From Ruditapes philippinarum (lineage: Eukaryota), in the NCBI RefSeq assembly GCF_026571515.1, contig NW_026860568.1:62001-126000 (forward strand): DNA of 64,000 nucleotides, read 5' to 3'. Positions within the stretch are counted from its first letter, which is position 1, and every line of letters starts with the position of its first letter. The translations under genes were made by a program, and so were the position numbers. Below the pieces are notes generated by a model. It made no database searches. It saw only the letters and a list, made by a program, of their open reading frames with translations, and was not told the origin of the DNA. Shown one piece after another: positions 3,272 to 44,354 of the stretch.

Positions 3272-4592
3272 ATGATGACTGCATAACGTTCGATGAATTC
3301 TTCCCGTTTTTAAAAAGTCTTAAAGATCCATCTGGAGAGCTAATGGACGCATTTAGACTTCATGATAAGAATGGAGATGGTTTTCTTGACGAAAAGGAAC
3401 TAAAAGGTAAATCTTACGTGTTTATTAAGATAATATGTTATAACATATATATTTTTTTCATAACTTTTTATAAAGTAGAAATTATTGGAATAATTTGTGC
3501 AAACGTTATTTGTAAAACGAAAAGAAATTTATGATTTTTGCAAAGCTGTTCAACATGGAATGGTTTTCATTTCAGCCATTTTTACCAGTGGAAATTTCAA
3601 CCCAAATGAGATTGATGATTTATTCAAACTAGTAGATTCAAACAACGACGGTAAAATTGAGTTCAAAGGTAATAAAATTTCCAGGGTTTGCTGTTCATTT
3701 TCATATTTATTACAGTACAAATATTAACAACATTAAAATCGTCATCGGATACAGCCCGTAACGCCGGAGTTTGACAGAAGTGGAGAAATTGTGCAAAAGT
3801 AACACCGAGTTGTACAAACATATTGCTGAAACGAGCAACAAGTAAACGAAATAATATGGTTCTAAACTAATTAAATTGAAAGAAATGAATAAACGCACCC
3901 GGCTGGTAAGCCATTACATGTTAAACATCAATACAAATACTTCAAGAAAATCGTTAATTTTCATGATGATTCGTTAAAATGACGACAAGGCTGTAGTATG
4001 CGTTTCGTTGAATAACTCATATGCGGTATACCTGAGACATTTGCCGACATTCTGTTTATAAAATATTATAATTCAGACATTTTATGCCGTAACGCTTAAA
4101 CATGTAAACGTCGCCTACAATAAGATAGTTAGGTCGTCATTTTCACGATTGATTTTGAAAGCAATCACTTCTTTGAACATTTTGTAATGAGGGTTAACAT
4201 AAAATGTCTACTAATAAAGTGATATATTTCCATTTGATTTACGATATATAAGATATTTGTCTGTTAAATTGCGTGCTTTACACAAGCACAGTTCGGCGGC
4301 GTTACTTTTCTATGGCTGCTGCGTTATTCTCACATCCTTATTCGTTCCGGGATATATACGGTGCTTAATGTACTTGAAGAAAATATATTTTTAATTGTTT
4401 GTGACATTATCTTCTATAATTGATAGACATTTGATAGATAAGTGAATATAGATTGTGTTTTAAGAGATTCTTTAAAAGATTTCATATATGATAATATCAT
4501 TTTTATTGTTCACTATAATAAACAGACAGTCCTAAATTTAAACATGTTTTTCCTTTTCAGAATTTGTCGAACTTTTCACAGAAATGATGTGA
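3272..4592 (+). CDS. Calmodulin-like EF-hand protein 1 (3' part; 5' exons not found, probably upstream of the window)
   Basis: Exons 3272-3406, 3576-3668, 4561-4592 with GT-AG junctions give ...DDCITFDEFFPFLKSLKDPSGELMDAFRLHDKNGDGFLDEKELKAIFTSGNFNPNEIDDLFKLVDSNNDGKIEFKEFVELFTEMM*; canonical EF3 and EF4 loops; closest to gene 2. Confidence 0.88.
3740..4340. mobile_element. Degraded foldback (MITE-like) element in the last intron of gene 1
   Basis: Nested imperfect inverted matches: AAAAGTAACACCGAG (~3795) vs TTCGGCGGCGTTACTTTT (~4292); TCGTTAAAATGACGAC (~3971) vs GTCGTCATTTTCACGA (~4133). Confidence 0.45.
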
Positions 4593-7500
4593 AGCAGGCA
4601 TGACATAGTTAACCAGATCGCAAACATAACTTTTCAAACACGCAATACGTGAATACATTCATCAGCCGTTCATACGTTCACCGCCAGTTGATAATAATAA
4701 CTACTCACTGATATTCCCCAATCCTGTCATCACTTAAAAAAACTAAATCTTTGTGTGTGCCTGAGCAACTTTCGAAAGTTTCTTCTGGACGTTGAGAAAT
4801 TTATTTTGTAAATAAATGGAAAGCGCACGACATTTAAGACAATATTTGATATTATAGAAGAAAATGAAGCTTTATTCTTTCATAAATCTCACAATACACA
4901 ATTAACAAAGCCATTATAGCTCATAGTCACATTTTGGTATATACCCTTATGAATTAATAGTACCATTAGTCAACAGTAAATCTGTCAATAAAGTAAACAA
5001 AATATATGTAAAAATAGTAAGATGCAAGAAACAAGATACACTACTCTTACAAGATTTAAATGCATTTGATTCGTAATTACTTCCCTTACATTTCAAAATA
5101 TCTAATACAAAAGAATATGTCTGAGACTCGTTCCTAAAAAATGTGACTGTTTTAAAAATGTTTTTGTTCATAATTGAATCTTAAATGTTTATTAAGATCC
5201 ATATAAAATATAAACTAAGTATAAAACATTATTTTGCATCTTCTTATTTTTGGTATTATTTGTATAAACAATGTTCCAACATGTCAGTACCTATTTACGT
5301 ACGCACGTAAAACGGTTAACGGTGATTAGGTCAAAAGATATCTGGTAAATAATTTTTTAGATTTCCTTCATGAACCTGTTCTCTGGTAAATTTTCCTATA
5401 AATTTTATTTGAAAAATAGTACTAGCACGATTATATGTGCAATATTACGACTATGTGCATTTGTATCTTATTATTTGTAATGGCATAATAATATTACAAT
5501 TGTTAAGTCTGAATTTGAGTTTCTCTCCAGTTTTGTTATTTACGTACTTCATATTTTTTTAAATATATTTAAATGAACATTTTATTGAAAAGGAGTGAGT
5601 GTGTTTTTGTTGTTTTTCCCCCTGCTTATTGCATTGCATGTTGTCGTTTTCCTCGACTTATATGCAGCATTTCCTAAAACCTTGTATAAAACAATGTGTC
5701 CAGATTTTCTACCAAGTTGAACTCTGATTGATTTTAAAATCTTACTTTGAGCCAGAACGACTGCATACTGTTTTACTTTACTATCCTTTTCAAGAACAAG
5801 GTTAATAAAACTGACTCGTGAATATTTTCTATTTAACTTTAATTATCTTACCAGCGTAATGATAAGTTTCTGTGTTATAGGGGTAATGAAAGAAGAAATG
5901 TTTTCATCTTTTTATATTTTTAATGCAAGTTATATTACAACTGATATTTATAACAACGAATTTTACTTTTTGTTAGATCTATCTGAATTTTATTCATAAA
6001 ATAAAAAGTAATACCGGTCTTATTGTTTCAAAAATTCGGGAGTCAAATGCTAAACATGTTATAGCGAGGCCAAGTGTCTATTGTCTGTAAGTGAACGGTG
6101 GTAGTTACCCTTCGGTCACGGGTCAGGTGGTCAATTTGTGCATCCCTAGCAAGGTACAAGCGAATAGCCGTGGAAAGGATTTCATAATCAATCACACCAA
6201 AATGTCACCTGCACCGTCCGGGGATTCGAAACCGGGTCGCCCGTTCTCTGTTTAAGATAGTAACCTCATTATATTACACACGAAAATTGACACGTATATT
6301 CACACATTTGCATTTTTCCGACAGATGGGTAGAGCAAAGTATAGTTTGCAATAAAATATACAGAGATGAATTGTACAAAAATAGAAAACTTTGCCTGAGA
6401 AGTACTTAAAATTGTTATTATTCAAGCTTCAATAGTGTATACGTTTCAGAACTGAAAACAAATTTTCTTGTCGACCTTTCAAAAGGATTTCTACAGGGCA
6501 TGTTAAATTTAGTCATATAGTTTGGTTTCTTTTCGTTGTAACAAAACTGACAATGTGAAACTAAGCTTAACTTATACTTCATTAGTCTTTGAATTTGTGT
6601 AATGGATTTGCGTTGTTCGTATAAATAGTCCAAAATATTGCCAACAGTTAAGAGCCTGATCAGACTGATCCAGTGTACAGGCTGACTAGACGCTGGGCTA
6701 GCATAACCACCCTTACCCCCCCCCCCCGGGTATTTATGTACACCTTTATAGTATTGAAGCTTAGGGTATGTGCTATCAATTGGCACTTGTTGTTTAGCTG
6801 AAACGTTTACCATGAGAACAAGTTGATTATCACCCCTTGTATCATATTTTTTCTATATAAGTTTTATAAGAGTTCTTCAGATATCTTCTCTATGATATTT
6901 GAAGTTTGTGATCTAAACATTGTTTTGAGTTGTAAATATATGTTTTATGATTTATACAAAAAGTTTTAAGTTTTAACATAAAAATAACATAATTAATGGT
7001 GTCCGCCATTTTAAAATGGCCGCCAATTATTGAACAGATAAACAATTCATAACAATATTTAATGTGTTTATACCCATTTATAAATAGTTTGATGTCATTA
7101 TTAATTATATATGATATGCTTAGTGAAACTAACTCTATGCTGGGTAGAATTTTAAATAGTCTGCTCTTGAATATTATTTCAATTTTATAGAGATATGAAC
7201 ATAATTGTTTGGGGTCGATTTGAGCTGCCTTTAGAGTTCGATATACATGTACTTTTAATTGAATTTCATGCGAATATTGACTTTTTGTCCTCTCTAGAAA
7301 CTTAATATACTCTCACTTATATGAAATACAATTTAAAAAGTTGGTAGTTGACTTATCCGTTCGTTCCTGCTTCTGTATCTTCATATGACTATATTGAATT
7401 GTAAAGCTTACCCGCACCAAAATGACTATTTGACAGAAAGGCTGCTCGTTGAGTTCCACCAAAGGAAACTGTTCTTACTCTTATTTTATTTAGTTGGTAG

Positions 7501-7753
7501 TTTTTCATTATTATTATTATAATAATAATTGAGATTAATGCATTACATTTCATTATCATTGTTACTCCCCTTTAAAAAACATTATAAAGTTACTTCCCCT
7601 ATTTTCATTGCGCCATTAGAAAAAAAGCAGAAGTACAATAGTATGCTTCTCCCTTAAAATCAATTGTTTTATAGTGATTTTGTTGATAAAATCTTTTTTG
7701 AAATGCAACACAGCATATGACAGCATAAGACACTGATGAATCATTTCGGACAT

Positions 7754-7893
7754 TGTCAGTCATACTCTCAGATTTTGGAGTTGGAAACTGTGTAACAGTA
7801 CCCTTTATCAGGACATTATTCTCGTGTCAGTCATACTCTCAGATTTTGGAGTTGGAAACTGTGTAACAGTACCCTTTATCAGGACATTATTCT
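7754..7893. repeat. 71-bp tandem duplication inside the Academ-like element
   Basis: TGTCAGTCATACTCTCAGATTTTGGAGTTGG...GGACATTATTCTC at 7754 and 7825. Confidence 0.9.
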
Positions 7894-7899
7894 CCCTGA

Positions 7900-10800
7900 T
7901 GCAAATTTTGCAAAAAGCAATTTGATAGCACATTTGTGCTGGGACCATTTCCATCTCATCCGTCTAAATAACAACCCATACTGCACTTCAAGAAAGAGAA
8001 CAGCCGTAAGATGATGACACTAAAAGAGAACAAACATCTTCTAATATATCAAATATACAGGCGACTAAGGCACGCACTGTTAAATACAAACCTGAAGAAT
8101 TGGCTAAATGCTTAATTATTGGGAAATAAGAACCATTTATCAATACTTTTCGACAAAGGAAATGTTTCGGGTTTTGCTGTTTCATCTGACTTTCTATGGT
8201 TCATGTGTACATGACAAGCAGATTGTTCTAAGTTGGGCTGGCTGGATCTCTCTTATTATAAACATCTGAGTTGCAAGATCAAACATCCTCTATAGAAGAG
8301 CACATTTATACCAATGTACTTTATTGCCCAAAGTACAAAAAATGCCAATGTTCAGAAAATTCTAGAAATTTCAAGTGTTTCAAGAGCTGTAAACCAACAG
8401 TACACATTTGTGACCTTTGATTTCGCTGCTGCTAAAAGGCATATTCTTTAGTATGGAAAATCCAACTAAGTACAGTGATACTATCAAACATTTAGGGGCT
8501 TTTCGCTTGCTAGGTTAATACCTAGGGGGGATTGGCAAACGGCATCGTGGAAGTCGTTTCTCAGAAATCTGATAGAGAAGAGTAAATGTGTTAATGTGTT
8601 CACAGTTGAAGCTCTCGAAAGACTGCTTTTGAAGATTTTGTAGCAGCAGTTATCCAAATCCATAACTCTAGTGCATTGGAAGATATTAACCAAGCGTTAA
8701 ATGTGCTAGCTGAGAATCAAAGACGTGAACACCTTGTAGATGTGTTAGCTAATGATTCTGTTTTTGAACTTTACAAGAGGTATCAAGAGTTCAAGGAAGA
8801 CTTCGGAAAAGGTCACTTAGGGAAGACGGCACAGTTTTGAATGGATCTATTGTTAACATTTGGCTGGTTCTTTGTTTTATGAGAGCAACGAAGGAAAACG
8901 ATCTTGACCTATACATATCAACATTATAAAATATGCTACAATTATTCTTTGCATATGATCATCAAAACTATGCAAAATATCTATCTGTATATGTTCTTAT
9001 GCAACACACCCAGGATCAAGAGAGCTTATTCAAAAATTCTGTAAATATAACTATTTAGCAAAAAATATACATTCATGCAAAGTCTCGTAGAGGCATAATA
9101 GGATTCAGGAGAAACTTTGCTGCCTACTACAGATGGAGTCAAACACAACACTCGAGATCCAGCTATGTTGAGGCTACATTCCGCATGGCCGGCATATCTT
9201 CAGTGGATTATTCTACACACATTGATACACAATTAGCAAATATAGCTGCATTTGAAAAAAAAATGTCACGAAACTCAAAGAATCAATAACTAACTTTATG
9301 AATCCATTTGTTACAGATAATAGGGATGTGTTGTTCTGTTTCAGTTCAGGGGCTCCTGCACCAGAACAGATCGAAAAGAGTCTGCTTGATGCCTATCGAA
9401 ATGGACTTGAGGCACACAAAAAGCTCGCCCAAGAACCTCTGGTTGATAAAACTGTTAGTTTTATGCGCCACTGAAGAAGCAAAACTGAAAAACCTTTGCC
9501 GATACAAAGAAAGTTAAGAAAGTGACATAAACTCAGAACAATCTTATCGAAGTTAAGATCGCTGGCAATGTCTTCGGTCAGCTTATCATGCTATCAGAAG
9601 GAAATGACATTATCCTTAAAAAGATACTAACGTACCCGCTTGGACCAGTCCCTTGGTCTCTAGCTTCAGCAGATGGCTTACCAACAAAGACTGCCAAGGC
9701 AAAACTAATTCATGATCTCGAAGGCGATTATACAATGAACAGAGGCCAGGTAACAAAAACATAATATACATATATCTTGAAGCACTTTCTTGTCTCCCTT
9801 CAACCTTTTAATACGCGCTGAAAAAGATTTTGAGATTTTGCCAAAATGTGTGCGTGCAGACTTTGTGACAGATACGTACAAAGCAGAATTTATCAAATCT
9901 GCAGAAAGGTCATGAAGAGGAATGAGTGATACATACCTGATAAAATGCAGCAAAACCAAAGTTTTGGTAAACTGGAAAGGTTTTTTTGTAATAATAATAA
10001 AAATAAGAAACAATTGATAAGATTTATATTACAGGAATTGTCTAAAGTTAAATCATATGCAGGGAAATTGGACGGAAGGAGAATCTTGTGCTTATTTGTT
10101 TGTTTGTTTGTTTGTTTCATTTTACGCCTTTACCCAACAGTATTTCAGTCATATAGGCGGGTAGTTTCTTAACCATCGTTCCTAGAGAGATACACCAATA
10201 CTAGACTACCTTCCTCCGTGCTAAACTACCAAAGCATCTCCCGGGGATCAAACCCAGACATGTGTATTCCTCCAATGTAAAGACGGAAAAGTAGAAGTAA
10301 TACCAGATCTACATACGTCTCAGGAGGAAGAATTATGCTACATATGCAACATGCGACTAAAAATGATGACAAAGCAATAATTGTACTTTCTCCTGATACT
10401 AATGTTATGGTATTACTTCTAACGTAAGCACAGTCTATCAACAGTTTAATACTATTTGACACAGGTGTGGCTAATAATAGAAGACTGTTTGAAGTAAATA
10501 AAATCATTGATAGACTAGGACAAGATCTTTGCAAAGCATTGATTGGGCTACTTAGTTTCACTGGATCTGATACCACGAGCCTTTTTTATGAGGAGGGGGG
10601 AATAATAACCAGTTCTCAAGAGAATGGGCAAGAGTGTTGATATTCAAGAATAAGATTTCAAAATTTTAGAACAGTTTGTTTGCATTTTATACAGGAAAGA
10701 CAAATAAAGTGTCATAAATAAGTTGCGCGTTGACATTTTCAGACAAAAGTTTAGACCAAATGCAGACATACTTACAATTACCTATGTTATTGACTTGCGT

Positions 10801-11130
10801 TCAATACCTGTTACCACCATATCTTTCCACATTAAAGATGCATATTATTTTTAGATCAAATTACCAAGTATTTGTGTGGTGAAATGCATTTTGTCAATTC
10901 CCAACTATTCCAAGTCCTGATAGATATGGGTGGAATACTAGTACAACCGGAGGTCTCACATATACATTGTACCTGGACAGAGGGAAATATACTACCACCA
11001 GAATTAATTGAAATCATAGCTAATACGAATGCAAGTGAAGTGTTAGAAGATGATTAAAATGAAGAAGGTGATCTAGAGGAAATTGAGATGGAAATGTATA
11101 TTGATGTCATTTTCGAAGAAGATTTCGAGT
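7900..11130 (+). pseudogene. Disrupted transposase/XPG-like nuclease ORF of the Academ-like element
   Basis: Motif remnants at ~8410, ~8945, ~9632, ~10389 and ~10554 (FTGSDTTS resembles the FTGCDTTS H3TH motif) lie in different frames with many stops; boundaries approximate. Confidence 0.65.
10090..10255 (-). mobile_element. Truncated SINE-like insertion within the Academ-like ORF
   Basis: (TTTG)n tail followed by TTACGCC...CAACAGTATTTCAGTCATAT, interrupting the coding remnants; same layout as other SINE 3' ends in the window. Confidence 0.45.
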
Positions 11131-12180: not shown

Positions 12181-12270
12181 AAAACACCAAAACACTCGGT
12201 AATCTGATTAATACTCGGGGGCTACGCCCCCGAGTACAAATCAGATAACCTCGTGTTTCGGTGCTCTTTC
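12181..12270. repeat. Long hairpin centred on CTCGGGGGCTACGCCCCCGAG (probable non-autonomous element)
   Basis: Arms ACACTCGGTAATCTGATT..TACTCGGGGG / CCCCCGAGTA..AATCAGATAACCTCGTGT; an upstream ~100-bp-spaced duplication lies at 12010-12140. Confidence 0.6.
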
Positions 12271-14518: not shown

Positions 14519-17284
14519 ATGGAGTTCGATGAAGAGGGTGAGTTATACATTTGAACTATAAGTATTAATTTTGTTTTCCTTAACTCATTTTGATATTATC
14601 ACGTAAGAGTCTTAACATTCTAATAGTTATTTAATTAAAATTAGTTAAAATTACAAGGACTAATGACAGTAGAAATATATACACAGCTAATGTAACTTAA
14701 TAACCAAAATTATAACATGATATGTTGATATTAATTTCATATAGAATGGAGAAGAAAGTTTGACAACTATGATATGAATAAAGATGGGGTAATATCTGGT
14801 GAGGAAATTACACGCTTGATGCAATATGTAGGATTTAATCCAACAAAAGCAGACGAGGAAGACTTTTTGCAAAGACTTGGAAAATCAAAATGCAGTAATT
14901 ATTATTTTCATACGTTTTAGCTATATTGTCTTGTTAACAAAACACCAACGTGAAGTACATAAAAGATTCTTTAAAATAGCTAGTATGTTGAAATTGCAAT
15001 TTATGTTTTAATAAAGTTTAAACACATTTCTGACAATTTATGGGTTTATAAAGTTTAAACACATTTCTGGCAATTTATGGCTTAATAAAGTTTAAAAACA
15101 TTCCTGGCAGTTTTATTGGATTAACTACACCATGACAATGACGTAAAAGTCTACATGTTCTCATTTATCAGTACAAGCGGTTACGGAGGAAACATTGTGT
15201 ATAACTAAAATACTGGGTTTTAGAAGCAGTCACCATTACCACTAGATCACCTTATCATTTAAAATGCCGGCGGCAACTGATACTATTCATTCTTACGGTG
15301 CAGACCCAGATAAGCTGTATTATCATAGTCTGCACTGTTCGCTTGTTAGTCAGTACATATTTGGAAAATTTTCCTAAAATTGATGAATGGTGTTGTCCAG
15401 ATTGAAAGCTCATTTAAAATATTTAGCGTAGTAAGGGAAAGTATATGTCTTAAGTGGCCATTTATCCAGCCATAGTTGAGTTGATATATTCAGAGCTTTT
15501 CCGTTCCTTATCATTTATAACGTAAAATGTGATAAACAAGATCAGCAAGGAAAGGCGGCGTTCAATGAACGCAACCCCCACGAAAAGCAACAAGAGCCAG
15601 CGGCAAGGAGCCCAGGAGGACCCCAAACAAAAACAGGACAGGGCACAAGGGAGATCATGGGCAGGCTAATCACTAAATCATAAATAAGAAGAAATAATAA
15701 GTAACTGTAACACTTTGTATGAATAAATTGTTGAAGAGTTCAAAACATCAAACATTAAACACCAATAACTTACAATAAATAACTATAACGACCAGCAAGT
15801 TATATGCACAAAATCTTGTCATCAAAAGTTCGCTATTTCAGAGGAAGAGGAAATAATAACTTTCGAGGAGTTCTTTGAGCTGGTAAAGACACTTCCCGAT
15901 CCGAGTGGAGAGTTGTACGTGGCTTTCAAATGCTTTGATAAAGATGACAGTGGTTATATTGATAAAGAAGAATTAAAAGGTGACTATATTTACGCAAAGA
16001 TTCGTGTCTTATTGAAACTTTTACACTCAAAAAGAACGAAGATGGTAATACCTGTAGTTTGCACTTAGAAATACTACATGTTTCCCTAAAAATGATTACA
16101 GGATGCAAAAAAACTTAGATATTGCAAGTTTTTTGTAAACTTTGACAAGGCTGTAATGAAAATACTTGACTTTTATCATTTCATTTATTTCTCATATGAT
16201 TAATTTGTTGAGGTTATTGCATTTAATCTTGAAATTGACAAATATCTTTGCAGAAATATTGACAAGTGGATACATGGATCCTAATGATATTGATGAAATT
16301 TTTGCACTGGTGGATGACGATAAAAACGGGAAAATTGAATTTAAGGGTACTTGTATACTTTTCTTATTTAACCTGCTAATTAGCCCTCTTTTAAGTGGAA
16401 CTGAACAGATGAGGCTATAAAAATGTAAAGGAAATGTTTTAATGCATTGTTTTACATCTAATTGTAATAAATCCGCTAACGCGGAGCTAGAATCGCGAAA
16501 ATATTTAAAATCGGGCCACATTAAACGTCTGAAAGGGTCTTAGTCAGTATCTTATATTTCTTCGGGCAATGTGACTGTTTCTTTAAAAGTGCCGATAATG
16601 TAAACGGAACTCAAAATGAAGTGTACACGAATAAAATCACATATGTATGACAAAGCGAAGTCAAATGGGCGCAATGCAGTCATTTATTTAGAATCTTTCT
16701 TATAATTATACAAAATGTAATTAATCGTTTAAATTTCAAAATTGATAATTTTGGTAAATTCATTTAAGGATAGCATTATTATATTTTCATGCTATTTTAC
16801 TTTATTTTCATAGTAATACATGTAGTACTCTAATTGAGATATTGAAAAATGATTATCTGGTACTTTTTTTAAGTTAATTTTAAAGATATACTGTGCTCAA
16901 ATTTGATTTTAGAAAATATGATAATTGCTTCACAGTCTCTTTGTAAATATTAAATAAACATGTTATGACATGTATTCACACGAAGTAAAAACGTTATGTT
17001 AAAATTATACACACCGTTGGTGATCACACAACATGAATATAGTGTCCTTAAAACTGACAGGTGTTTTTTAGAAAATACCAACTTTACTTGACCTGTAATA
17101 GGTAACACAGCTTCAAGACAAATTTAGTACGAATTTCATAGATTTCGTTTAAAATATTTTACTCAATTATGAGCATAGTATATCTTTAAAGAAAAAATGT
17201 GCAGTGAAAAAATCACGACAATAATTTAAAGTATAGAAAATGATCTCGTTCTTCTTTTCAGAGTTCATTACGCTTTTCAAGTAA
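14519..17284 (+). CDS. Calmodulin-like EF-hand protein 2 (140 aa)
   Basis: Exons 14519-14537, 14745-14894, 15842-15979, 16254-16346, 17262-17284 (423 nt): MEFDEEEWRRKFDNYDMNKDGVISGEEITRLMQYVGFNPTKADEEDFLQRLGKSKCKEEEIITFEEFFELVKTLPDPSGELYVAFKCFDKDDSGYIDKEELKEILTSGYMDPNDIDEIFALVDDDKNGKIEFKEFITLFK*. EF1, 3 and 4 canonical; EF2 degenerate. Confidence 0.88.
14997..15110. repeat. 37-bp minisatellite x3
   Basis: CAATTTATGTTTTAATAAAGTTTAAACACATTTCTGA variants at 14997, 15034, 15071. Confidence 0.85.
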
Positions 17285-19686: not shown

Positions 19687-19804
19687 GAACCTTTGAAAAA
19701 TGGTAAAATATATTTTTATACATTTATATGTTATGATTTTATTAAGAACCTTTGAAAAATGGTAAAATATATTTTTATATATTTATATGTTATGATTTTA
19801 TTAA
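19687..19804 (+). repeat. 59-bp tandem duplication containing the ATG and first splice donor of gene 3
   Basis: GAACCTTTGAAAAATG|GTAAAATATATTTTTATA...ATTAA at 19687 and 19746, one mismatch. Confidence 0.9.
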
Positions 19805-25909: not shown

Positions 25910-28879
25910 ATGGTAAGCCTTTTTGTTATATTTGGACGTTTTATCTGTTTATTTGTTTATAAGATTTGGTTGGTCTGTCTACCCGTATGTACAGATATAC
26001 AATGCATTGTTTCTCATAGTAAGCACTTGTAAATATGAAATGAGGTTTAACAAGAATATTGATATTTATTTTCAACGAAAAGACCTTGATGTTTGGTTAA
26101 AAATCTTAGTCTACGTTAGTATCAGTATTTATCGAAAAATTATAACTACCTTTACACAATCGCACTGGGGGTTATAAATGCTTGAAATATAATATAAAAG
26201 GGGTGTACCAATGATCCAAAATATGTAATTGATAACGTTTAAAAATGGTAACAATAACTTCAATAAGGATCATACGGTTGAGATGTTCATTGAGAAGTAT
26301 TGTATAGCATTTGTTATGTTTATTGATTTGGTGTATAACATAACCAATATTAACTCTCTTTCATATCACAATGATTTTATGAGAAAACAAAACCCCAAAA
26401 AAACAAAACCAAGGTGAGGATACCGGTTTAAATTTAAATATAAAATCTTAAACTTAACGAGATATTTTGAGATGAAGCTGCATGTTTGTCAAAATTGCGT
26501 CTATATTGCATTTCAAATTCATAAAGATATTTAAATATTCCATCAATATATCATATTTCTCATATCCCCTTATCAAATGCTTTTCATACAACATTTATTT
26601 TAGTTTGATTGTGTAGAGCTTACTGTACAGGCTAACTCTCGAATCCGTTCCTTGAACTAAACAGAATTAAGCGATTGGTATGATATTCTTTCTCAAGGAG
26701 ACAACGGCTATTGTCCCTAATGATGTTTGAAGCCATGCGGCAGCAATCCCTAGATTACTAGTCCGACGCGTTAACCACGTTACCACTCATTCACTTTGAT
26801 ATCTCCTTTGTAACACACTGATTAAAACAGTAATAGTATTTATTAGAAATGAAGTGTTGTTGATTTCTCATAATTCTTTCTTTGGCAGGATGAAGAGACT
26901 ATTGCCAGGAAAGCTGGTAGGATACATCTTTCGTAATCATTTTAGTTATACAATGATACCTTAGTTTGGCAAGTATATTTTTTCCATTGTCTTCTTATAT
27001 TGACATTGATGAATGACCATTCGTGATCTGATTGTTTAAAATTGTATGGTTGTTGTTTAGTGTGGTGATGTTGAATTAAAGTGTTCCTTTATAAGAACGC
27101 TTTATTATTTCTAAAACATTTGATCAAGTTGAATCTTCAAACTGTTTCTCGAGAATAAACATTATCTAAATGTTTTGATATGTCCTCTAAATTAATTTAC
27201 ATTTATTTGGCAAAGATTGGCAGGCAGTTCTAGATGATATGGATTTGGACCAAGACGGAGCTCTGAACAGAGAAGAAATACGTGTAGCAATGAGCCGAGG
27301 TGGCTATAATCCAACCGATGAAGAAATAGAATCAATGTTCAGAGAAGGCGGTATATCCTTGCTAAAATATTGAAAATTTATAAAGAAAAACTTTTAAATT
27401 GAGCTCATTTAAATTTTGGTACAGTATTGAATATAGTACTACTATCCATTTATATTATCAGATACATTGTATATAAAACCTCTTTAAATTGAACCACCAA
27501 AGAATAGTTTACCGCTCGGTTAAGCTATACAGAGGCTTAACATTTATGTCGTTATTTACTTTTGTTTTTAAATACCGACTGAAACAAAAGGGTAAATAAT
27601 GCAACTATAGCTTTCTGAGACAACATTTGCCTTTGAATGCAGTATGTAAGTGTGCTTACGTGGGTAGTGATATACACAAAGTGTAGATGTTTCGATGTCC
27701 CTAAAAAAACAAAATGTTTCCATGCATGTCATAATCCCAGCATTTGACATCAAATATTCAGTGCAATCGCTATAAAATATAAAGTTAAAATGACAAAGAT
27801 GAAATATTTATTTTTAACCACAAAAGTGTTTCAATGGATCTAAACCGTTCTGAAAGTGCTATTTGTATTACATGGTGATGTTGCAATGCATTTGTTTTCT
27901 ATAACTTGACTGAAAAGTAGTTAATATAAGATATTGATTCATCATTTTCTGCAAGTATTGGTACTTCATGTTGTATGACTATCAGACTGTATAAAGAATT
28001 ATCTATCATTGATATATTACAGCTTTTGATGATGGAAAGATTACATTTGAAGAATATTTTGCCTTCATGGAAGATATGCCTGACCCGAAGGAAAATCTAA
28101 GGGAAGCCCTTGATGTGTTTACTGAACACGCAGGTGAAGATGGAGCAATCGAAAAAGAAAAGCTAAGAGGTTTAAATCGGTGTTTCCTTTCTTTCAAAAA
28201 CAAAAACAAACAAAAAAATCAATGATTTTATAAAAGGAAACGTAATGTTAAGCTGAGCATAGAAAAACATATGTTTGTAGTTTTGATTTTCAAAACTGAT
28301 TTATCACAAATTATTGCACATGTACGTTATTCTTCTACCAGCATACGAGCCTACTCAATATTTCAGAGATCCTCATGAAGGGAATTCCTGAGGATGACGC
28401 AAATGAACTTCTAGACGCTGTAGACGTGAATACTGACGGGCTTATAGACAAAGAAGGTAGGCATATTGTATGGTAGCGATACATTAAAATTTGGTTCTGG
28501 AGTATCAACAGTAATGTCGTTGAATTCATAAAATAAATGTATTAGTACGATACATGCTTTGAATGGTAGAAATTTATTAAAAGTCATGGCCATGAATATT
28601 GATCAAGTGTTGATTTGAGTACGAAATGTTATTGAATCTGTAAGGTATGTGAACGCCTAATAGAAAATTATGGTAACTGACAAATTTTGATGGAATGTCC
28701 CGGATTAAGACAGGTAACGGTACAAATAAGTATGCTTAAATAGAGGAGCTCAATTGATTAAAATAGCTTTGAATTTATATTACTTATTCACTTTGTTGTT
28801 GTTCTTATACATTAATTTGTATTTACTTTTTTCCTTTCTTTTTTCTTTAGAATTTATCACACTTTTAATGAATGTGTAG
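25910..28879 (+). CDS. Calmodulin-like EF-hand protein 4 (143 aa)
   Basis: Exons 25910-25912 (ATG), 26889-26916, 27216-27350, 28023-28169, 28367-28456, 28851-28879 (432 nt): MDEETIARKADWQAVLDDMDLDQDGALNREEIRVAMSRGGYNPTDEEIESMFREGAFDDGKITFEEYFAFMEDMPDPKENLREALDVFTEHAGEDGAIEKEKLREILMKGIPEDDANELLDAVDVNTDGLIDKEEFITLLMNV*. EF1 and EF4 canonical; TATAAAT at 25835; exon 3 acceptor is a weak AAG. Confidence 0.85.
26600..26790 (-). mobile_element. Degraded tRNA-derived SINE remnant
   Basis: Ends with ...CGACGCGTTAACCAC, resembling the reverse-complemented A-box head of other SINE copies in the window. Confidence 0.35.
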
Positions 28880-30847
28880 TCCTTACGGTTGCCGAGTAAC
28901 AGCTCCTCATGAACAATTTTCTAGGAAGGTTTTGAAACAAGGATAACGCAAGTGTATTCTTACACTATTTCATGACACTGACGTGTTGTCTCTCTTTAAC
29001 TGAACGTCGTGTTAAGCCGCTAATTGCATTTGTATCATGATAACATGTTTACGTGAAACCTTTGATATCTTAGCATGAATTCACATTTTTTTTTTCTTTT
29101 CATATTTTGTTAAAATAATGCTTCATCACTCAAACATAGTCTTTTCATATCGTTTGTTATTCACAAAGTTGTCCATCTCTTTCACGTGGTCATGTAATGG
29201 CAAGACATGGATTTTTACTCTCTATAGTTTATGATTTTATACGGACTTGAAAATTGCATGAACGCAAATTACTTATTTCGCAAGCGGAATACAAGTGTTT
29301 TATTTTCATGTCGGATAAACAATCTCAACGTGAAAAGCAGAAACGTGCTGAGAAATGGCCAGTGGGTCACCTGAATTTGAGAATGGCTTCGATCACACAC
29401 CTGAGTGTGGCTTGGGCACAAAGGCGTGACGAACTCTCAGGATTATGTATTATCAGTTATGATGAATAGCAATACACCCGCTATGACACACTTATCATTG
29501 AGAGAACAGATATATAATTCAACCGAATACACCGTCTGGGAAGTAATCGTGCAAAAAAGTAAACACAGCTAATTGTCCGAAATTTCCCGAAAGAAAAAAC
29601 AACTGATGACTACAACAAACACTCAATTGTTGAGTAACTTTGTATATATATTTTTTATTCGAAGAATAAAGAATAACAACAGTTAGTATCTTCAATTCAT
29701 TCAAGTTTTGAGGCATCAATAACTTTCTCTGTAAAACATTTAAATTTTGTTATGGTCTATATATAATGTAAAATGTTCTTCCATTACATGATTGTTAATT
29801 GTAATTTCTATAAATGTACATTGTCATTTTATGCCAAATAAAGAATGTTATGTTATGCTTAAACGTTTGATATTTCAGGGGCATATCTATGGTGTTTTTG
29901 TTTGCTTGTTGTTGTTGTTGCTGTTGTTATGCAATCGATTATAAACCTATGAAATAGCCGAGATGCAGAAGTATCTACGTTTAGTGTTTCGAATGTGGTA
30001 AAAATCGAATTTGTTCAACAATACGGACTCAAATCTCAAACAAATTTTCTGCTTTTCATCGGAACTTGATAACCCGAATCAGTCGAAAATAAGCAAATAA
30101 AATTCCACTCTGCTTGTATTTCATTGGAATGTCAATTGCATAAACAAACTTCTGCAGAAAGTATTCAAGTCGTTCAAAATTAGGATACATCTTCAATTTA
30201 TTTAAAATTTTAGCGTAAAAGCACAAACAAAGAAAGCCAAATTTAAATTATGATAATTATTATTTACATTTATTGACAAGTTTAACTGATTCCGATGTTT
30301 CATAGAAGTGAGTTTGCCATTTTGATGCCGTTTTCCGATGTTTAAGATAATCAAGAACTGAATTTTAATATAAAACATGCTTATTTCTATTATTGCATAC
30401 ACAACTTAGGACATAAGTTGAACATATCATCATTTCTATAAATAATTATGTACACGAAAGCTTGATTATACTTTAAAAATTAAAATCAATGTACTGGAAG
30501 ACTTATAAGTAGCTTTTTATAACTTAAAGTATCGTGATATTCACATGAAACCGGCAAATATGACCGAATATCATTGTGCTTTTCCTATCCATATTATTTG
30601 GAAATGCGAATCGAATAATTTTGGCTTTTACGTGGGGAAAAAACTGTCAGATGAGCTGTAATATTGTCTGATGCGTATGAATTTCTTTATTATATAAAAA
30701 ATTTAAAAATTACAACAAAGCTTCAAATATCTTTCCGTTTTCGTTTGTATCAAATCGTTTGCGTATTGGTTAAGTACAAAACTACTGACGTATATATTTG
30801 AATTTTAAAGCTTTCAAATTTGTATGACATTGCATATTGCACACCAA

Positions 30848-30962
30848 AAATTATAATTTTTATGTCAACACGTCTAATATCGGTGAAATTATAATGTTTA
30901 TGTCAACACGTCTAATATCGGTGAAATTATAATGTTTATGTCAACACATCTAATATCGGTGA
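30848..30962. repeat. 38-bp minisatellite x3
   Basis: AAATTATAATGTTTATGTCAACACGTCTAATATCGGTG variants at 30848, 30886, 30924, downstream of the gene 5 stop. Confidence 0.9.
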
Positions 30963-31114
30963 TTCTCCATTTTTTTAAATCTTGACTTCATTATATCAAT
31001 CGCCACACATGCAGTGAAAGATTCCGATAAAAAGTGTTTGTATATCAATTTAAAACACACGATAAATGTCTTAATAGAAATAGCTGTTGGAAGATCCGTA
31101 TGCTGCTCCATGCG

Positions 31115-34100
31115 TTAACATTCAGGGTCCAGTGTATCAACATCTAAGACTTGGTTTGTTATCAGATAGGTTGCAAGTTCTGAAATGGAAAGTAATTGTT
31201 GCACACATGGTCAAAGATATATGACATTATAATATTAAATTATTATAATTATTATTATTATTATGACCCATCTTTGAGAACTTGATACAAAAAGTTAATG
31301 ACGTAAGATATAGGCAATATTATAATACTGCACGTTTGTAACGTCGCTTTTCATTGGATAATCGTGAGGTTTATATAGTTTAATATACACGGCTGTTGTC
31401 GATTCATGAAGAAATCTTACGGATTTTTTTTCTATAAAAATGATGCTTGCAGTATTATTAATTCGTTATAAAGATTGTTGACAGGTTATATGGCCGTATA
31501 TAAACGGCGGTTTGCAATATAACACTCGCCCAACGGCTCATGTTATATTTACAAATAGCCGTTTATATATGACCATATAACCTGTCAACGATCTTTATAA
31601 CTAATAGTAAACCAGGCATTATGCATGTCCTATGCTATGAGTAAAATAATATGCAGCTTGTCTTCAATGAATAGAATAAAATATGCACGCACACTTACTT
31701 TAATTGCCTTTAACATTTTCAAAATAAACTTACATAGATATAAGAAACCTTACCTTTGCAGCTCAATAGCCCGTCCTCATTCTCATCAGCTTCTCCTAAG
31801 ATTCTATTTAATATTTTCTCAACATATTCTTCATTGAGGTCCACATCAATTCCTCTGACACTATGACTGCTCTTTAGGATATTTTTGAGCTCATCTACGC
31901 TGATCTGACCTAGAAATGGAATTTATTACATCAAATCAATATGGTTAAAGCCTTTGTTGTTTTTTTTTCAACATATGTCCCAAACTTCATCGTTGTAACA
32001 AGATCATTCCTTACAAATAATAAAAACTATACTAACTTGTCATTTAGCTGTTAACCGTCAAGAGACTGGTTATGATGAAATTGGCATAAAGTGGCATTGT
32101 TAAATATTGGGTCCAAAGACTACACATTATTTTTTTCCTTAAAGTAAGGGCGTTAATATCAAGAAATAATAACAAGAAAGAAATACAGACAGATTCATAT
32201 CATTTACTTAAAAGCATCATGAAAACTTTACACTCTACCATCATCGTCGGTATCAAAGACTTTGAGAGCTTGTTCTAAGTCCTCCACAGTTGGAGTGGCA
32301 AATTGATTATAAAGCTCTTCAAACAGTTCAAATGTGATTGTACCCTCAGGGTCTGCTGTAATATGTAAAAATGTTTCTATGGTATACCACTTGTGATACA
32401 TAAGTATCATATTGAATTTTGAGAACATAGCAATATTTTTTAATAAATGAAAAAGATTGTTGATGACTTTGTGTCGTGGTTTCAAGTTAACTTAGATTTT
32501 GTAAAAATATAATATCTAGCATGTCATTTGCCTTTGTCAAATTAGTAATTTAGTAATTACATTCCTAGTCGAATTTATTATATTTAAGTATAGGAATTAA
32601 ATATTTTTGCATTTTGGGCAATGCCTTATTAAATGGGTTATGTCTTATTCATTTTAATAATCACCTTGATATTTGATTTGAAAAAAACCGTCGAAAGGTC
32701 TTAAATAAATGTTGATATTGCAAAGGCTTTCTTAAAAGACTTAATAATTATGTAACTTATATTTCATATCTATACAATTTAACAATAATTGAAATATGTT
32801 AAGATAGAAAACAGTTGTATTACTTATGTCATGTTCATTGAAGAAATTGTCTATTTCCACGGCTGGAGGATTTTTGTTTAATTGACAAATAGCCGAGTAA
32901 GCTTGCTGCCTTGTTACCCCTTCTCCATCATCACTGAAGATACTAAATTCTTCACGAAGGTCTCCCTAGTAAGACAGGAAAATAGATATGAGCCGTGTCA
33001 CGACAAAACCAACGTAATGTGTTTGCTACCAGCATGGATCCAGAACTGCCTGCGCATCCGCGGATGCGCAGGCTGGTCTGGATCCATGCTGGTCGCCAAC
33101 GCACTATGTTGATTTTGTCGTGACACGGCTCATATATGTTTCTAGTTGAAACAAACTTTAACTTCAACTTTTACAAGATGCTTATCTTAAATGAGATACC
33201 ATACAATTACATATTATAGAATATTTCACTAGTCTTTCTCCCTCTGTCTTCAACAACATCCTGTTATAGTTTAAACTGTTCAATGATGTTCTTCCTATGA
33301 ACTGATTACATAAATAGGAAATTTATTTAGATCTACATCTATCATTCTGAATTATGAAAATCTTTCAAAAGCAATAACAGTGGAAGAGGACAAAACTTTA
33401 ACGTCGCGGGTTTTCTTATTTTCCTTCCCATGCTTTATATCTTAAAATGACTTGTTCATCTAGCAATCTGTGGCCGTATCAACTACTGATCTTAAGTAAT
33501 TTCTTAAGTTTGGACAATTTATTTTTTTCATTTTTTAAAAAAAAATGTAAGTTAGCCAAGATAAATCTTATATCTAAGTAAAAAATAACTTAAGATCAGT
33601 TGTGAATACGCCCCTGGACTAATAAGTCATTTATCAGTCAAATGTTTCGTTTTGGATCAAAATGTCTGTGTATATCTTCCGATGGGCGGGTACCCGAGGG
33701 ACGGATATTTCGATCTGAACCACAGACATATGTAAGATATCTTTTTGACGGTGTTGTATAGCACGCGACTCATCTGGTACCCGCAAGCCAAATAAAATCT
33801 CATGAATGGGTTAAACTAACGGAAACGCCAGTCTTCTATGCAAGAATACCTATTTATTTCGATATCTGATACATCGAAAGAGGAAATAGAATTAATGTAG
33901 TTTCCATGCCTGTTAAATAAATTGAGATCATTAGAGCTTTACGAATATGTTTTATTTATCATATACCCGGAAAAAGAACAGTCGAGTAAGAACAATTTCT
34001 TTAATTTACTTTTAAATTAACATTTATTGTGTTTTACGCTATGTTTGTATAACATTCATGATTACGTCATGAACAACCGTAATTTTTAAGTAACATGTGT

Positions 34101-34894: not shown

Positions 34895-36778
34895 TCAGCG
34901 TTTGATAAGTCCGTCTTGAATCATCGTAACCAATTCTGTTGGAATAAAAAAGTATTTTAAATCGCCTGTGTTCGTGACAACAGTACGATTGACANNNNNN
35001 NNNNNNNNNNNNNNNNNNNNNNNNNNNNNNNNNNNNNNNNNNNNNNNNNNNNNNNNNNNNNNNNNNNNNNNNNNNNNNNNNNNNNNNNNNNNNNNNNNNN
35101 NNNNNNNNNNNNNNNNNNNNNNNNNNNNNNNNNNNNNNNNNNNNNNNNNNNNNNNNNNNNNNNNNNNNNNNNNNNNNNNNNNNNNNNNNNNNNNNNNNNN
35201 NNNNNNNNNNNNNNNNNAAAAATCATGTTATAGTTAAATTTATGTCTCGTCGGCGAAGGGAATATAAGTTCATTATTTATAATTTGACACGGAAACAAAT
35301 TTATTGTTTGATTTTATTAACCTGTCAATTCCATACTGATTATACGCTTAATGCACAGAATATATTAATATTCGATAAATGTTCGGTAAATTCCGTGAGA
35401 GGTTTGCAGTAAGATGTGATTAAACTTATCTAGTTTCGATGAATAAGTTACACTGACCGTTATAGCGCAATAGGGTACGGGTATATTTTATCTGAATGTC
35501 CAACGTGTTGCAAGATCGAGACAGAGTATGTCCAGGTTTTTTTCTTATTCATAATTATTTTCAACATTTTTGAAGTTATGGTTGTTCCGTTTTTAATATG
35601 TTTTGCACTTTTTTATAAATACTATACTTTTGTATATAACATTGTTATATTATAACTGTTTGTTATAATAGAATTAATTCTGAAAATTCAGTCGGATTAA
35701 AATCAATAAATGTAATTTCGGTACCGTAAAATACAATAGAAAATGTGATAATTCAGTGTTTCTTACGTGTTTCATATCCGTGTAGAAAATTTTGCAGGCG
35801 CTTGACCATTTAATACAAAATTTCTTAAAAATAAAGAAAAAATAAGTCTAAAAAGAATGTCGAAAGAAGGGATCGAACCTAAGACCTCTCATGCATTAGG
35901 TAATCACTTAACCGACTGCGCTATTGCGGATGTTACGAGAACCTGTAAAAGAACCTGTCAAGCTAGTGGGAGTTATCCAAACGTTATTTATATGCTCCAT
36001 ATTAATTCTCGTAAAATAAACGGACACAAACGAAGTGGGACCGAATATTTAAATGAGTGCTATAATGTATTCAAAATTGACAGGTCAATAAAATCAGACT
36101 ATACTTAAATTATAAAATATGAAATATTTTATAACATTTCAAAAAGCAATGTGATAAAAACATCATTAAAATTTTATCATTTCTAAAATAATTTACAAAA
36201 ACAAAATGAGCTGATTAATATTTTGTTAATAATTTTCAATGTTACCATCTATTTCTAGTTCATGATTTTTGTTTCTATCTCCAATACTAAGTATTAATGC
36301 GACATAACTATCTTCCGTCACTTGACTGGTATTTTCCAATTCACCAGCTGCCTTAAGAATTTCTCGTAACTCGTCGCTGTCTATTTTCCCTGAAAATAAG
36401 ATATTCAAATATAAAGCTACGTATATTAGTAAATCCTTTCCTAAATCGAGATAAAATATGAAAATGAGAACCGTCAGTAAAATATTCAACACTCGAAGAA
36501 AAATCGGATTGGAAAAAAGAATGTTCAATGTAAAGATGGTCGCAAATATGTACCAGTTTAATTAATAAGTATGTAGCACGACTAAAACCTCTTCTGTCGA
36601 TTGTATATACGAATGCATATAAAATACATGTACATATTCAGGAAATAAACGATAACAATAAGTTCTTCTATTCAATGATTTACATTGTATTTATCTATAA
36701 ATAAATATGTGCTGGAAATTGAAATATGAATTAGATGAATGAATTGATGAATGAATGAATGATGGTGGGTGGTGGTGG

Positions 36779-36823
<45 letters not shown>

Positions 36824-39203
36824 GGGACAACGTTTATAAAGACTACCAAGAATACATATGGAAGCAAACTTGATTAAATACTTACCATTTTCGTTTGCAT
36901 CAAAATGTTTAAGTGCATTTCTAATGACATCCCTGGGGTTTCCAAGTTGAATAAATAATTCTTCAAATTCTTCAAAACCTAATGTATCGGTATCTGAAAT
37001 TAAACAAACATAATATTTGATTTTTTGCAATGAAAGAGCTTAAAATCCCATCTTTTTCATGTACTTTGTTGGAACATAATCATATTCATTTTCGAACCAA
37101 ATATATTATCTTTTCATACATTGTATATCATTCTCAAAGGTACCTGTTCAGGTTTGTTTGTTTGTTTGATTGGGTTTTACGTCACACCGACCCAGTATAG
37201 GTCATTTGGCGACGTTCCAGCTTTACTGGAGTTGGAAGACCTCGGGTGCCCTTCCGTGCATTATTTTCGTGCATTATTTTAGGCACGAACAGGCACCTGA
37301 GTAGTACCACCGACGTTCCGTAGGCTAGCTAAATAGCTTCCTCACATGAAAGAATCCAAAGCGCCTGTCGGAATTCGAACCCACAGCGGTGAGGGACAAG
37401 TGGTTTAAAGTCAACGACCTTAACCACTCGGCCACGGTTCAGGTTTGTATTCCAAGCCATATGTTTAGAAATTTCTAGAGTATCATGTATTTTTTCTTTT
37501 GTTAATGCCCATTATGCCTAAGAAAAGCCTTTATTTTATATTTTTCAAAAACTTTATATTTTTCGTATACTTTTATAACTTCCAAAATGTTACTCATTGG
37601 CCAATTTTTTTCATCTGCTGTTTTTAACTGTTTGTACAATTATGGTGATGGAAGTCAAAATACTACATTTTACTACATACTTTTATAACACATTATTTTA
37701 CATTTATTGCTACTTTATTCAGGTTATAAGCATCTAACTTGCTCTAAAATCATTATTTTAATGTTAAAAAAATTATTCATGTACCCTTTTTAAAGAAGTA
37801 AAAATGTATTCATTTCTGTGGCATAATGTCTATTTGAGCAGTGTCACGACAAAACCAACATAATGGATTTGCGACCAGCATGGATCCAGACAGTCCGCGC
37901 AGTCTGATCAGGATCCATGCTGTTCGCTTACAGACCCTATAACAAGTAAAGAGACTGAAAGCGAACAGCATGGATTACCGATCAGACTGCGCGAATGCGC
38001 ATGCTGGTCTGGATCCATGCTGGTCGCAAACCCATTATGTTGGTTTTGTCGTGACACGGCTCATTTAATCCGTATAAGGCTGCTGGCGGAAACTGATCCA
38101 ACCAACGATACCACCAGTGCAGATCATGAACAATCGGCACATCATGGTCTGTATAGTTCGAAATTCAGTAAGTACATACATAATGCATTTCAAAATTGTA
38201 CCTCCTAAAATGATGAATGGTTTTGTCAAGATTGACAGATGGACAAAAGTATATTTAAGAAATTTGGCTTGGCGAGTATTAACATTTACACTAACTAAGA
38301 TATTAAAAAAAGTCAGACAAAAAGCAGATAAGTTCTTACCTGATTTGCCTTTTTTCTTCCAAAACATATTTATATCACGCTCGATTGGATTTTGTCCTGC
38401 TTCAAATAGTGCATTTAAAGTCTTGCTCTTGGTCAAACAGTTTGATTGTTTGTCCTTCCACTCGTCAAATGCTTCTCTTATTGTGCTCTAGAAAAAAAAC
38501 ACAGAGTTAGTGAAATACGGCTAAACTTTAAAGCATTTTGATTTTGTATCAAAAAATAAAATGTTAAGAATTATTTCAATAAACTTTGATCTTCATCTGA
38601 CATCTTCAACCAAATTGGTGTCTTACTCAGCAAAACAGGTAGTAACAGCCAAAGCATTGTTTGTGAAATACAGTTTAATTTGTGCACGTTAATAACCGTT
38701 GTAACAAGAGCTCGGATTGTATGCCTATAGAATCTCTTTTGAATTGGAAACCGAGCCTGGAATATGTTTAATCTTGTCGTTTTGTGCGTTCTTTATGAAT
38801 TCCGTTTTTCTCTATTTTTTTCTCCTTCTTTTATAAGCAATACTTTCATAGACGCACTCCTAATGTTTCAAAATGCTGTATCATGTTTTTTTTACCATTT
38901 CTAGGTTGTTAACTCGTGGAGATTACGATGCAAATTGCAAACTTTAGATCTTATCTATGTAAAAAAGTTAAGCTCTGTTGAACTGTCTTACTGTATGAAA
39001 TTGATCGCTTCTTTATTTCTCTATGTAATTGTCTTGTTAGTATTTTTCCCACTAACCACCTTCTTCTTTATAAAGAATGTGAAACCACTGAGTATTTTAT
39101 TATTCTATTTATTTACATACGCACTGTTGAAAATATAAACTCTGTTGTAAAAGAAAAAAATAAAACTTACCGGTGCTCTTATTCCTTTCAACGTTTTTTC
39201 CAT
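34895..39203 (-). CDS. Calmodulin-like EF-hand protein 6 (157 aa), basic degenerate N-lobe
   Basis: Exons 39171-39203, 38340-38487, 36886-36993, 36246-36389, 34895-34935 (474 nt): MEKTLKGIRAPSTIREAFDEWKDKQSNCLTKSKTLNALFEAGQNPIERDINMFWKKKGKSDTDTLGFEEFEELFIQLGNPRDVIRNALKHFDANENGKIDSDELREILKAAGELENTSQVTEDSYVALILSIGDRNKNHELEIDELVTMIQDGLIKR*. The last intron spans the assembly gap. Confidence 0.83.
34995..35217. other. Assembly gap (223 N)
   Basis: Run of N. Confidence 1.
35865..35926 (-). mobile_element. tRNA-like SINE head / tRNA pseudogene fragment
   Basis: Reverse strand reads TAGCGCAGTCGG (A box)...GGTTCGATCCC (B box); no convincing acceptor stem. Confidence 0.45.
36735..36823. repeat. Compound microsatellite (TGAA)n(GGT)n(GAT)n
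   Basis: Seen directly; explains the poly-Ser/Pro in ORF 36731..37030. Confidence 0.95.
37158..37436 (-). mobile_element. tRNA-derived SINE with 12-bp target-site duplication
   Basis: Minus strand: A box TGGCCGAGTGG, B box GGTTCGAATTCC, (AAAC)n tail; GTTCAGGTTTGT at 37146-37157 and 37437-37448. Confidence 0.85.
37835..38063. mobile_element. Palindromic MITE (TGAGCCGTGTCACGAC family), long form
   Basis: Same TIRs as 32989-33132 with an extra internal segment; TT flanks. Confidence 0.85.
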
Positions 39204-43100: not shown

Positions 43101-43574
43101 ACAGAGTTACCTTCTCTTGCGTACAGATGGGGGTAATGATGTGAAATAGCATTAAAAGTTTCAAAGCAATATCTCAAAGGGTTAAGGCAATAAGTGGATT
43201 TTTACCCATATTCAATGTATTTTCTAAGTCAAAAAGGGGCATAATTCTGTCAAAAACCTTGACAGAGTTATGTCCTCTTGTCTGTTGATGAAGGTCGTGA
43301 TGGTAAACAAGTATGGTCAGTTTCAAAGCAATACCTCCAATGGTTTTGAAATAAAGTGAGGTGGTACAAAAAACTTAACCAAGCTCAATACACTTTCTAA
43401 GTCAAAAAGGGCCATAATTCTGTCAAAAAACCTTGACAGAGTTATGTACTCTTGTCTGTAGATGGAGGTTATGATGGTGAACAAGTATGGTAAGTTTCAA
43501 AGCCATACTTGTAATACTTCTGAAATAAAGTGGGGTGGTACGAAAAACTTAACCAAGGTGTGACGCCAACGCCA

Positions 43575-43611
<37 letters not shown>

Positions 43612-44354
43612 GGCGAGTAGGATAGCTCCCCTTTTCATAGAAAAGTCGAGCTAAAAACTTTCTTCCCCACCGTTTTGCACTAAATTATTTGAAATGTAAA
43701 ATATATGTCGTTTCATAGTTTGATCTTTTTAAATTCTTTAAAATTAAACAGATATTTCTACGAATATAGTTAGCATAGAAAAGATACTCGTATTTGATAA
43801 GAGATATTAAAATTATTCCTGTCACAATTAAAATACTTCCTGAATTAAGAAAACGTTTATTAAAACAATGAATCGTATATTAAAAATGTAAGAAATACCA
43901 TGGTGTCAAATTCCAAAATCCCACAAATGGAGCACAGTTTTTCGTATCGAACAGTATACAGATATGATGTTTAATATTTAGACAGGTTTCTCTGTACGTT
44001 GTTAAGGTCTTTAGGGTATACAGTTAAATAACACGCACTTAAAATGCGATAGAATCATCAGAGCGAATTTATAAACTCCTTCATTCATTACACTCAATAT
44101 CACTGAATGGCATGAATACTGAAATTTAAAGAAAGATATAAAACGAGATTTACATCATTTCATTTAGACCTATAAGTCCTACATACAAGCAAAGTTTAAA
44201 TCACGTATTTTGTATTATTCGATTTTTTTTTAAAGATGGGGACTTAGTTTTACAAGTAAACAAAATACTCTTTGGATTGTATTTGAGACAATTAGAAATC
44301 TGTACGTTTCCCTCATTGAAATATTACTTTACTTGATTACTTTATCTTAACCAT
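40195..44354 (-). CDS. Calmodulin-like EF-hand protein 7 (161 aa), N-lobe degenerate, paralog of gene 5
   Basis: Exons 44352-44354 (ATG; alternative ATG|GT at 43899-43901), 42302-42452, 41864-41977, 40727-40879, 40195-40259 (486 nt): MGLTEEELQEHFNDENGGDELTAKQANNVLCTCEKNPLPTEVVVFFENEGLGPGGTITFEQFKRLYDSIADPTVEDLAEALKVFDRNEDGTIDKEELREILLRRDDVSSDITGDLDDETIDAIFNAVDSFGDNDGYISCTELATFLIENKTFRVEPSEDQE*. Confidence 0.85.
42729..43656 (-). mobile_element. Non-autonomous Helentron/HINE-type element with internal tandem repeats
   Basis: AACAAGA end with hairpin GCTGTCCGTAAGACAGC; subTIR GCTCGACT/AGTCGAGC; ~4 units of 163-172 bp; (GACGCC)n microsatellite; A-run insertion site. Confidence 0.8.

Follow-up and report, generated by a model that had tools for sequence, protein, structure and literature searches.

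Myosin essential light chains, like members of the CALML family of vertebrates, have the calmodulin fold with some or all of its loops blind to Ca2+, and one of their lobes binds its partner constitutively. Vertebrate calmodulin genes have introns in the loop of the second EF-hand (EF2) and at Glu-12 of EF4. Here we describe a cluster of calmodulin-like EF-hand genes in the Manila clam, Ruditapes philippinarum, seven of which (g1 to g7) lie in one 64-kb window of its 1.41-Gb assembly (C9055:62001-126000, on a contig of 248 kb; positions without a contig name are those of the window). Among molluscs, the abalone calmodulin genes have four introns and a first exon that consists of the start codon only (PMC6171432). 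Pearl-oyster (Pinctada fucata) CaLP, a calmodulin-like protein, has an extra hydrophilic C-terminal tail as its hallmark (PMC5040781), and an EF-hand/calmodulin orthogroup has a mean of 38.2 genes in bivalves versus 19.5 in other molluscs (Regan et al. 2021, PMC8382680).

The clam locus is very probably a cluster of about 70 kb of calmodulin-derived genes, made up of two old, locally duplicated subfamilies, A (g1-g4 and, upstream of the window, g0) and B (g5-g7), in convergent orientation. This reading is carried by the observed gene structure and intactness of the members, by purifying selection, by the fact that g4 and g5 are transcribed and spliced, and by kinship to calmodulin. The sequences also support the view that the seven genes are paralogues which are intact and under selection and which differ in their sets of putatively usable Ca2+ sites.

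Like calmodulin, the encoded proteins have a layout of four EF-hands, they align to it colinearly and it provides their best sequence matches. Unlike calmodulin, they share about a third of its residues and most members have one to three degenerate loops. Subfamily B, moreover, has a longer linker between EF3 and EF4 and a C-terminal tail, and the third intron lies just after the EF3 loop in A, or inside that loop at position 6 in B. With their partly dead loops, the B proteins and g4 may be compared to the CALML proteins and essential light chains; however, B retains a canonical EF3, while most essential light chains bind no Ca2+. The initiator Met of B genes (seen in g5) is on an exon of its own, as in the abalone calmodulin genes (PMC6171432). 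The acidic, hydrophilic tail of about a dozen residues in g5 and g7 recalls that of P. fucata CaLP, a likeness by description, against which stands the degenerate N-terminal lobe of the B proteins. The bivalve-enriched family was counted at the level of the orthogroup (PMC8382680), and neither this cluster nor its two subfamilies and loop patterns are described there.

Structure and extent of the cluster

Exon models rebuilt from the sequence, by six-frame translation and inspection of junctions, give seven spliced EF-hand genes in the window, spanning 3272-42452. The models, with the evidence for each, are as follows.

3272-3406, 3576-3668, 4561-4592 (stop included), + strand: g1 (A); AG/GT splice sites, in-cluster tblastn
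C9055:56373-56516 (outside the window), + strand: EF1 exon of g1; in-cluster tblastn, splice sites
14519-14537, + strand: candidate first coding exon of g2, 207 bases upstream of the next exon; from sequence only, with an ATG, six codons and a strong donor
14745-14894, 15842-15979, 16254-16346, 17262-17284, + strand: g2 (A); splice sites, Pfam EF-hand, best PDB matches to calmodulin
21038-21181, 22781-22924, 23744-23845, 24289-24317, + strand: g3 (A); splice sites, Pfam, PDB matches
27216-27350, 28023-28169, 28367-28456, 28851-28879, + strand: g4 (A); splice sites, spliced RNA-derived contigs
32965-32824, 32355-32239, 31909-31754, 31179-31115, - strand: g5 (B); splice sites, RNA joint, RefSeq protein
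34995-35217, no strand: assembly gap (N) between g5 and g6
38487-38340, 36993-36886, 36389-36246, and a putative last exon at 36007-35988, - strand: g6 (B); sequence models
42452-42302, 41977-41864, 40879-40727, 40259-40195, - strand: g7 (B); splice sites

All 25 modelled internal splice sites are AG/GT, and the reading frames are uninterrupted in every model. Given the frequency of stops in the introns of the cluster (0.070 per codon), the chance of 133-160 stop-free codons is about 1e-5 to 7e-5 per gene. A and B have two phase-1 introns in common, in the EF2 loop and in the codon for Glu-12 of EF4, both of them places at which vertebrate calmodulin genes also have introns. The A genes begin exon 2 in phase 1 and the B genes in phase 0, directly after the initiator Met, as seen in the g5 protein P0004.

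The seven spliced genes had been placed correctly by the first-pass annotation of this window, as confirmed by the rebuilt models, their AG/GT junctions and Pfam, but the single tandem cluster that it proposed is in fact two groups on opposite strands, with g1-g4 on + and g5-g7 on -. Its claim of conserved junctions holds within each group, and between the groups for the EF2-loop and EF4 Glu-12 introns alone. The same annotation counted six complete, uninterrupted open reading frames (ORFs) and left g1 as incomplete. The frames are indeed open, but a full protein from start to stop can be shown for g5 alone. As for g1, its EF1 exon was found 5.5 kb upstream of the window start, across an 8.7-kb intron with a tandem repeat, and so the gene is not truncated. 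Within that intron, at window positions 60-1400, the tandem repeat has units of about 750 bases, with ORF strings that recur at 60-311 and 810-1061.

Searches of the regions upstream of the A genes with tblastx and blastn, and scans for mini-exons and ATG exons, gave one convincing candidate for a first exon, that of g2. For g7, an ATG followed by GT at 44354-44352 on the - strand may be the first exon, and the last exon was located because it resembles that of g5, which is verified by RNA. The exon with the start codon of g5 was not located in the genomic sequence. No modelled frame crosses the assembly gap. Its distance is 2030 bases to the closest exon of g5 and 771 bases to the putative last exon of g6, and it could conceal the ATG-only exon of the former gene or the true last exon of the latter.

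Reading of the whole 248-kb contig shows that the cluster extends upstream past the edge of the window. A near-duplicate of g1, here called g0, is found at C9055:41006-46629, 19-21 kb before the window start, with 95% protein identity to g1 and 87-95% DNA identity, introns included. At the head of the cluster, at about C9055:35290-37100 and about 25 kb before the window start, is an extra EF-hand gene with a different exon structure, in which EF2 to EF4 are on a single exon, and which may have an acidic N-terminal exon at C9055:34872-35123. No further EF-hand gene of this cluster's kind was found in the whole contig.

EF-hand loops and protein features

A loop was taken as intact if it has the full set of ligands, i.e. 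Asp at position 1, Asp, Asn or Ser at positions 3 and 5, and Glu at position 12. From EF1 to EF4, with 1 for an intact and 0 for a degenerate loop, the genes are scored as follows, in agreement site by site with the loop table of the first-pass annotation for g2-g7.

g1: 1-1-1-1, with Asp at position 6 of EF2 (upstream EF1 exon included)
g2: 1-0-1-1
g3: 1-1-1-1, with Glu at position 6 of EF2
g4: 1-0-0-1
g5: 0-0-1-1
g6: 0-0-1-1, with His at position 6 of EF4
g7: 0-0-1, followed by an EF4 loop of 14 residues

Full-ligand loops thus number four in g0, g1 and g3 (all three with an altered position 6 in EF2), three in g2 and two in g4, and in subfamily B two in g5 and g6 and one in g7. In the B proteins the N-terminal lobe is without its Ca2+ ligands, whereas EF3 has the canonical form and EF4 either has it too or is altered. 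The A proteins have about 140 residues and the B proteins about 140-160 (160-161 in g5 and g7). Eight models of 132-160 residues align throughout, with two EF-hand pairs and no other domains, and Pfam EF-hand_1, 5, 6, 7 and 8 match the exons and the full g5 protein. Protein identity is 28-55% within A, 27-42% within B and 23-34% between A and B.

Transcription and annotation of g4 and g5

Reads of four runs, known by the coded labels X5, X11, X21 and X23, were mapped to one 6-kb stretch (27100-33099) that holds g4 and g5. A 534-base X5 contig aligns in four pieces (27257-27349, 28022-28149, 28365-28454 and 28849-29052) whose ends match the four modelled exons of g4, and the joint between exons 3 and 4 of this gene (28151/28365) is also seen in X11, at a depth of 191. 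For g5, a joint at 31179/31754 (GT..AG, - strand) is present in X11 at a depth of 200, and this is the junction predicted beforehand from the similarity of g5 to g7. It is supported, then, that g4 and g5, at least, are transcribed and spliced. The RNA check of junctions called for in the first-pass annotation has in this way been made in part, with g4 spliced as modelled and the last junction of g5 verified. X21 raw RNA reads give thin cover of the g4 and g5 exons, and X23 has no reads on those exons within the stretch, so that expression depends on the sample.

RefSeq independently lists g5 as XP_060608636.1 (P0004, 160 aa), “calmodulin-like isoform X1 [Ruditapes philippinarum]”, which is identical to Met plus the g5 model. 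The 3' untranslated region (UTR) of g4 reaches to at least about 29110, and g5 probably has a long 3' UTR down to about 29470. Contigs of X5 and X11 continue beyond the stop of g4 as far as about 29320, and contigs of X11 reach from the last g5 exon to about 29470; the 3' ends of the two genes thus appear to meet or overlap within 28950-29470.

Age of the duplicates and selection

Between g0 and g1 there are 7 synonymous and 6 non-synonymous changes, giving a ratio of non-synonymous to synonymous rates (dN/dS) of 0.18. These two genes are the sole recent duplication in the cluster. In the older pairs the proportion of synonymous differences (pS) is 0.72-0.93, i.e. saturated, and that of non-synonymous differences (pN) is 0.28-0.50, from which we conclude that the older duplicates are old and constrained, the ratio itself not being estimable for them. 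Both results agree with selection rather than decay, as the first-pass annotation had proposed. Exon 3 of g4 has two allelic differences, both of them synonymous. In the whole genome, the nearest relatives of g2 and of g5 are the cluster's own members, which points to local duplication.

Two simple origins can be rejected. A single recent tandem burst does not agree with the opposite strands, the different third intron of the two groups and the saturation of synonymous sites, and chance ORFs or a pseudogene array do not agree with canonical splice sites, frames whose openness is improbable by chance, and the expression of g4 and g5.

Decay of individual members is a separate question. It is unlikely, in our view, that some of them, above all g6, are decaying duplicates, that is, unprocessed pseudogenes that still look open. 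The gene g6 has no canonical loop in its N-terminal lobe and a His at position 6 of EF4, its very short putative C-terminus was found by sequence only, the RNA mapping, which covered the g4/g5 stretch, gives the gene no support, and its identity to g5 and g7 is just 27-30%. However, all of its splice sites are canonical, its approximately 139 stop-free codons have a chance probability of about 4e-5, its EF3 is fully canonical, and compared with g5 its pN of 0.50 is below a saturated pS of 0.72. Furthermore, g4 and g5 are demonstrably expressed.

Some points weigh against the interpretation of the locus as a cluster of intact, selected calmodulin-derived paralogues. The sequence does not establish the first exons of g1, g3, g4, g6 and g7, nor the last one of g6, and this most degenerate copy could be non-functional. 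Support from RNA is limited to g4 and part of g5, all of it from the stretch mapped. Exons 2 and 3 of g5 are outside the high-depth X11 contigs and have thin X21 raw-read cover only, possibly because of allelic divergence above the 8% cut-off or because of another isoform. The label of X5 and X11 as RNA is a guess, although the fact that their contigs skip introns at GT..AG argues for RNA. Finally, Ca2+ binding, targets and tissue roles are those that we infer from the sequences.

Relationship to calmodulin and other EF-hand proteins

Solved structures were searched exon by exon with the A genes and with g5 at full length. For g5, the best 60 matches listed are all calmodulin; its residues 3-145 pair with residues 12-146 of calmodulin, at an E value of about 1e-14. 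The A exons match calmodulin at colinear positions, calmodulin ranking first for exon 3 (EF2-EF3), while single B exons have weak calmodulin or light-chain matches only. By sequence the proteins belong with the calmodulin-like (CaM/CML) members of the EF-hand superfamily, having two EF-hand pairs, calmodulin as nearest characterised relative and at least one full-ligand loop. The first-pass annotation was right that none is calmodulin itself, a near-invariant protein of 149 residues with four canonical loops: loops are degenerate in g2 and g4-g7 and altered in others, and g5 scores 58 bits against calmodulin versus 346 against itself.

Protein searches add few relatives. An exhaustive search of 1.84 billion protein representatives with exon 4 of g5 returned, apart from g5, only a fragment and a repeat protein of bacterial origin that is unrelated. 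A word-index protein search with full-length g5 found only g5, which is weak evidence on orthologues for short or diverged queries, and searches with single exons gave only unspliced ORF fragments of clam DNA (P0001 and P0002) from a collection that is poor in spliced eukaryote proteins of suitable length. In the Atlas, a look-alike cluster of 161-residue EF-hand proteins is molluscan, which we treat as a lead only, and the structural neighbour list is headed by an arthropod essential-light-chain cluster. Two unspliced ORF fragments that are 98-100% identical to exons of g3 and g5 (P0001 and P0003) are on JGI metagenome contigs of 1-1.7 kb, and presumably represent clam DNA in environmental samples.

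That the proteins are Ca2+ buffers or associated with the shell matrix, like pearl-oyster CaLP, instead of being intracellular switches, seems quite unlikely. The hydrophilic acidic tail of g5 and g7, the CaLP hallmark (PMC5040781), is in its favour, but the full g5 protein starts directly with an EF-hand domain, without a signal peptide.

A one-to-one orthology of the genes with EF-hand proteins that are widely conserved and already characterised (for example troponin C, the essential or regulatory light chains of myosin, or centrin), which would make the cluster ordinary housekeeping equipment, is very unlikely: troponin C is close behind calmodulin for the g3 EF1 exon (E about 1e-13 for both), and myosin essential light chains are among the weak matches of B exon 3, as they are at the top of the Atlas neighbours, but this is opposed by the calmodulin matches of full-length g5 and of the A EF2-EF3 exon, by the lack of any other above-threshold protein in the searches with the g5 exon and full-length g5, and by mutual identities of 23-55%, which are unlike those of conserved single-copy orthologues.

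Genomic surroundings

Next to g7 is a TAF6 or TAF6L-like gene (46650-56455, - strand), with Pfam TAF and TAF6_C on its exons, and this neighbour could anchor comparisons of synteny. Near it, a long minisatellite at 59270-60450 has a unit that leaves all three + frames open, with recurring peptide strings. Between g1 and g2, the region 8600-11100 has higher G+C and several longer ORFs on both strands, and is probably what is left of a transposon.

Copies of a high-copy inverted-repeat element are present at 32950-33130 and 37810-38140. At 32986-33096, RNA-run depth is from thousands to about 140,000, with many opposite-strand joints, as for an expressed hairpin-forming repeat, e.g. a miniature inverted-repeat transposable element. 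The last intron of g5 also carries a repeat (31300-31700), which all four runs cover very deeply (up to about 13,600) and with strand-switch joints, unrelated to the expression of g5.

Functional and evolutionary implications

The proteins probably work as two-lobed adaptors of the calmodulin type and would, in the manner of calmodulin, its CaM-like relatives and the light chains of myosin, hold helical target segments with both EF-hand lobes. A lobe whose loops are intact would switch in response to Ca2+ and one with dead loops would bind its partner constitutively, making the B proteins putative C-lobe-only sensors. The Ca2+ stoichiometry would thus vary among the paralogues, as would, probably, their targets and tissue.

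A stronger version of this mechanism appears improbable to us. According to it, the cluster would be a diversified decoding panel, kept for a long time, in which distinct combinations of live sites read different Ca2+ amplitudes or act as light chains that Ca2+ switches and whose partners are specific to bivalves, the B proteins being mollusc-specific C-lobe-only sensors with a CaLP-like tail. If true, the combinations would be all four sites, EF1+EF3+EF4, EF1+EF4, and the C-lobe only.

The first-pass annotation regarded the locus as an undescribed system and a lineage-specific panel. The first is not supported, given that g5 is in RefSeq as calmodulin-like, that this genome has many comparable EF-hand arrays (at least 60 strong EF-hand-pair exons across them), and that the bivalve orthogroup is published (PMC8382680). 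The second is doubtful, because the duplicates are old apart from g0 and g1, and because of the molluscan look-alike cluster in the Atlas. Since bivalve calmodulin-like expansions and partly Ca2+-blind relatives of calmodulin are already known, the cluster consists of further members of a known bivalve calmodulin-like expansion and is not a new category.

What results is an annotation, clean and in part verified by RNA, of one calmodulin-like cluster in a clam of commercial importance, with its orientation, subfamilies and extent corrected. The cluster also provides natural variants in which live and dead EF-hands are combined in defined ways and which are usable for studying how Ca2+ sensors diversify after duplication.

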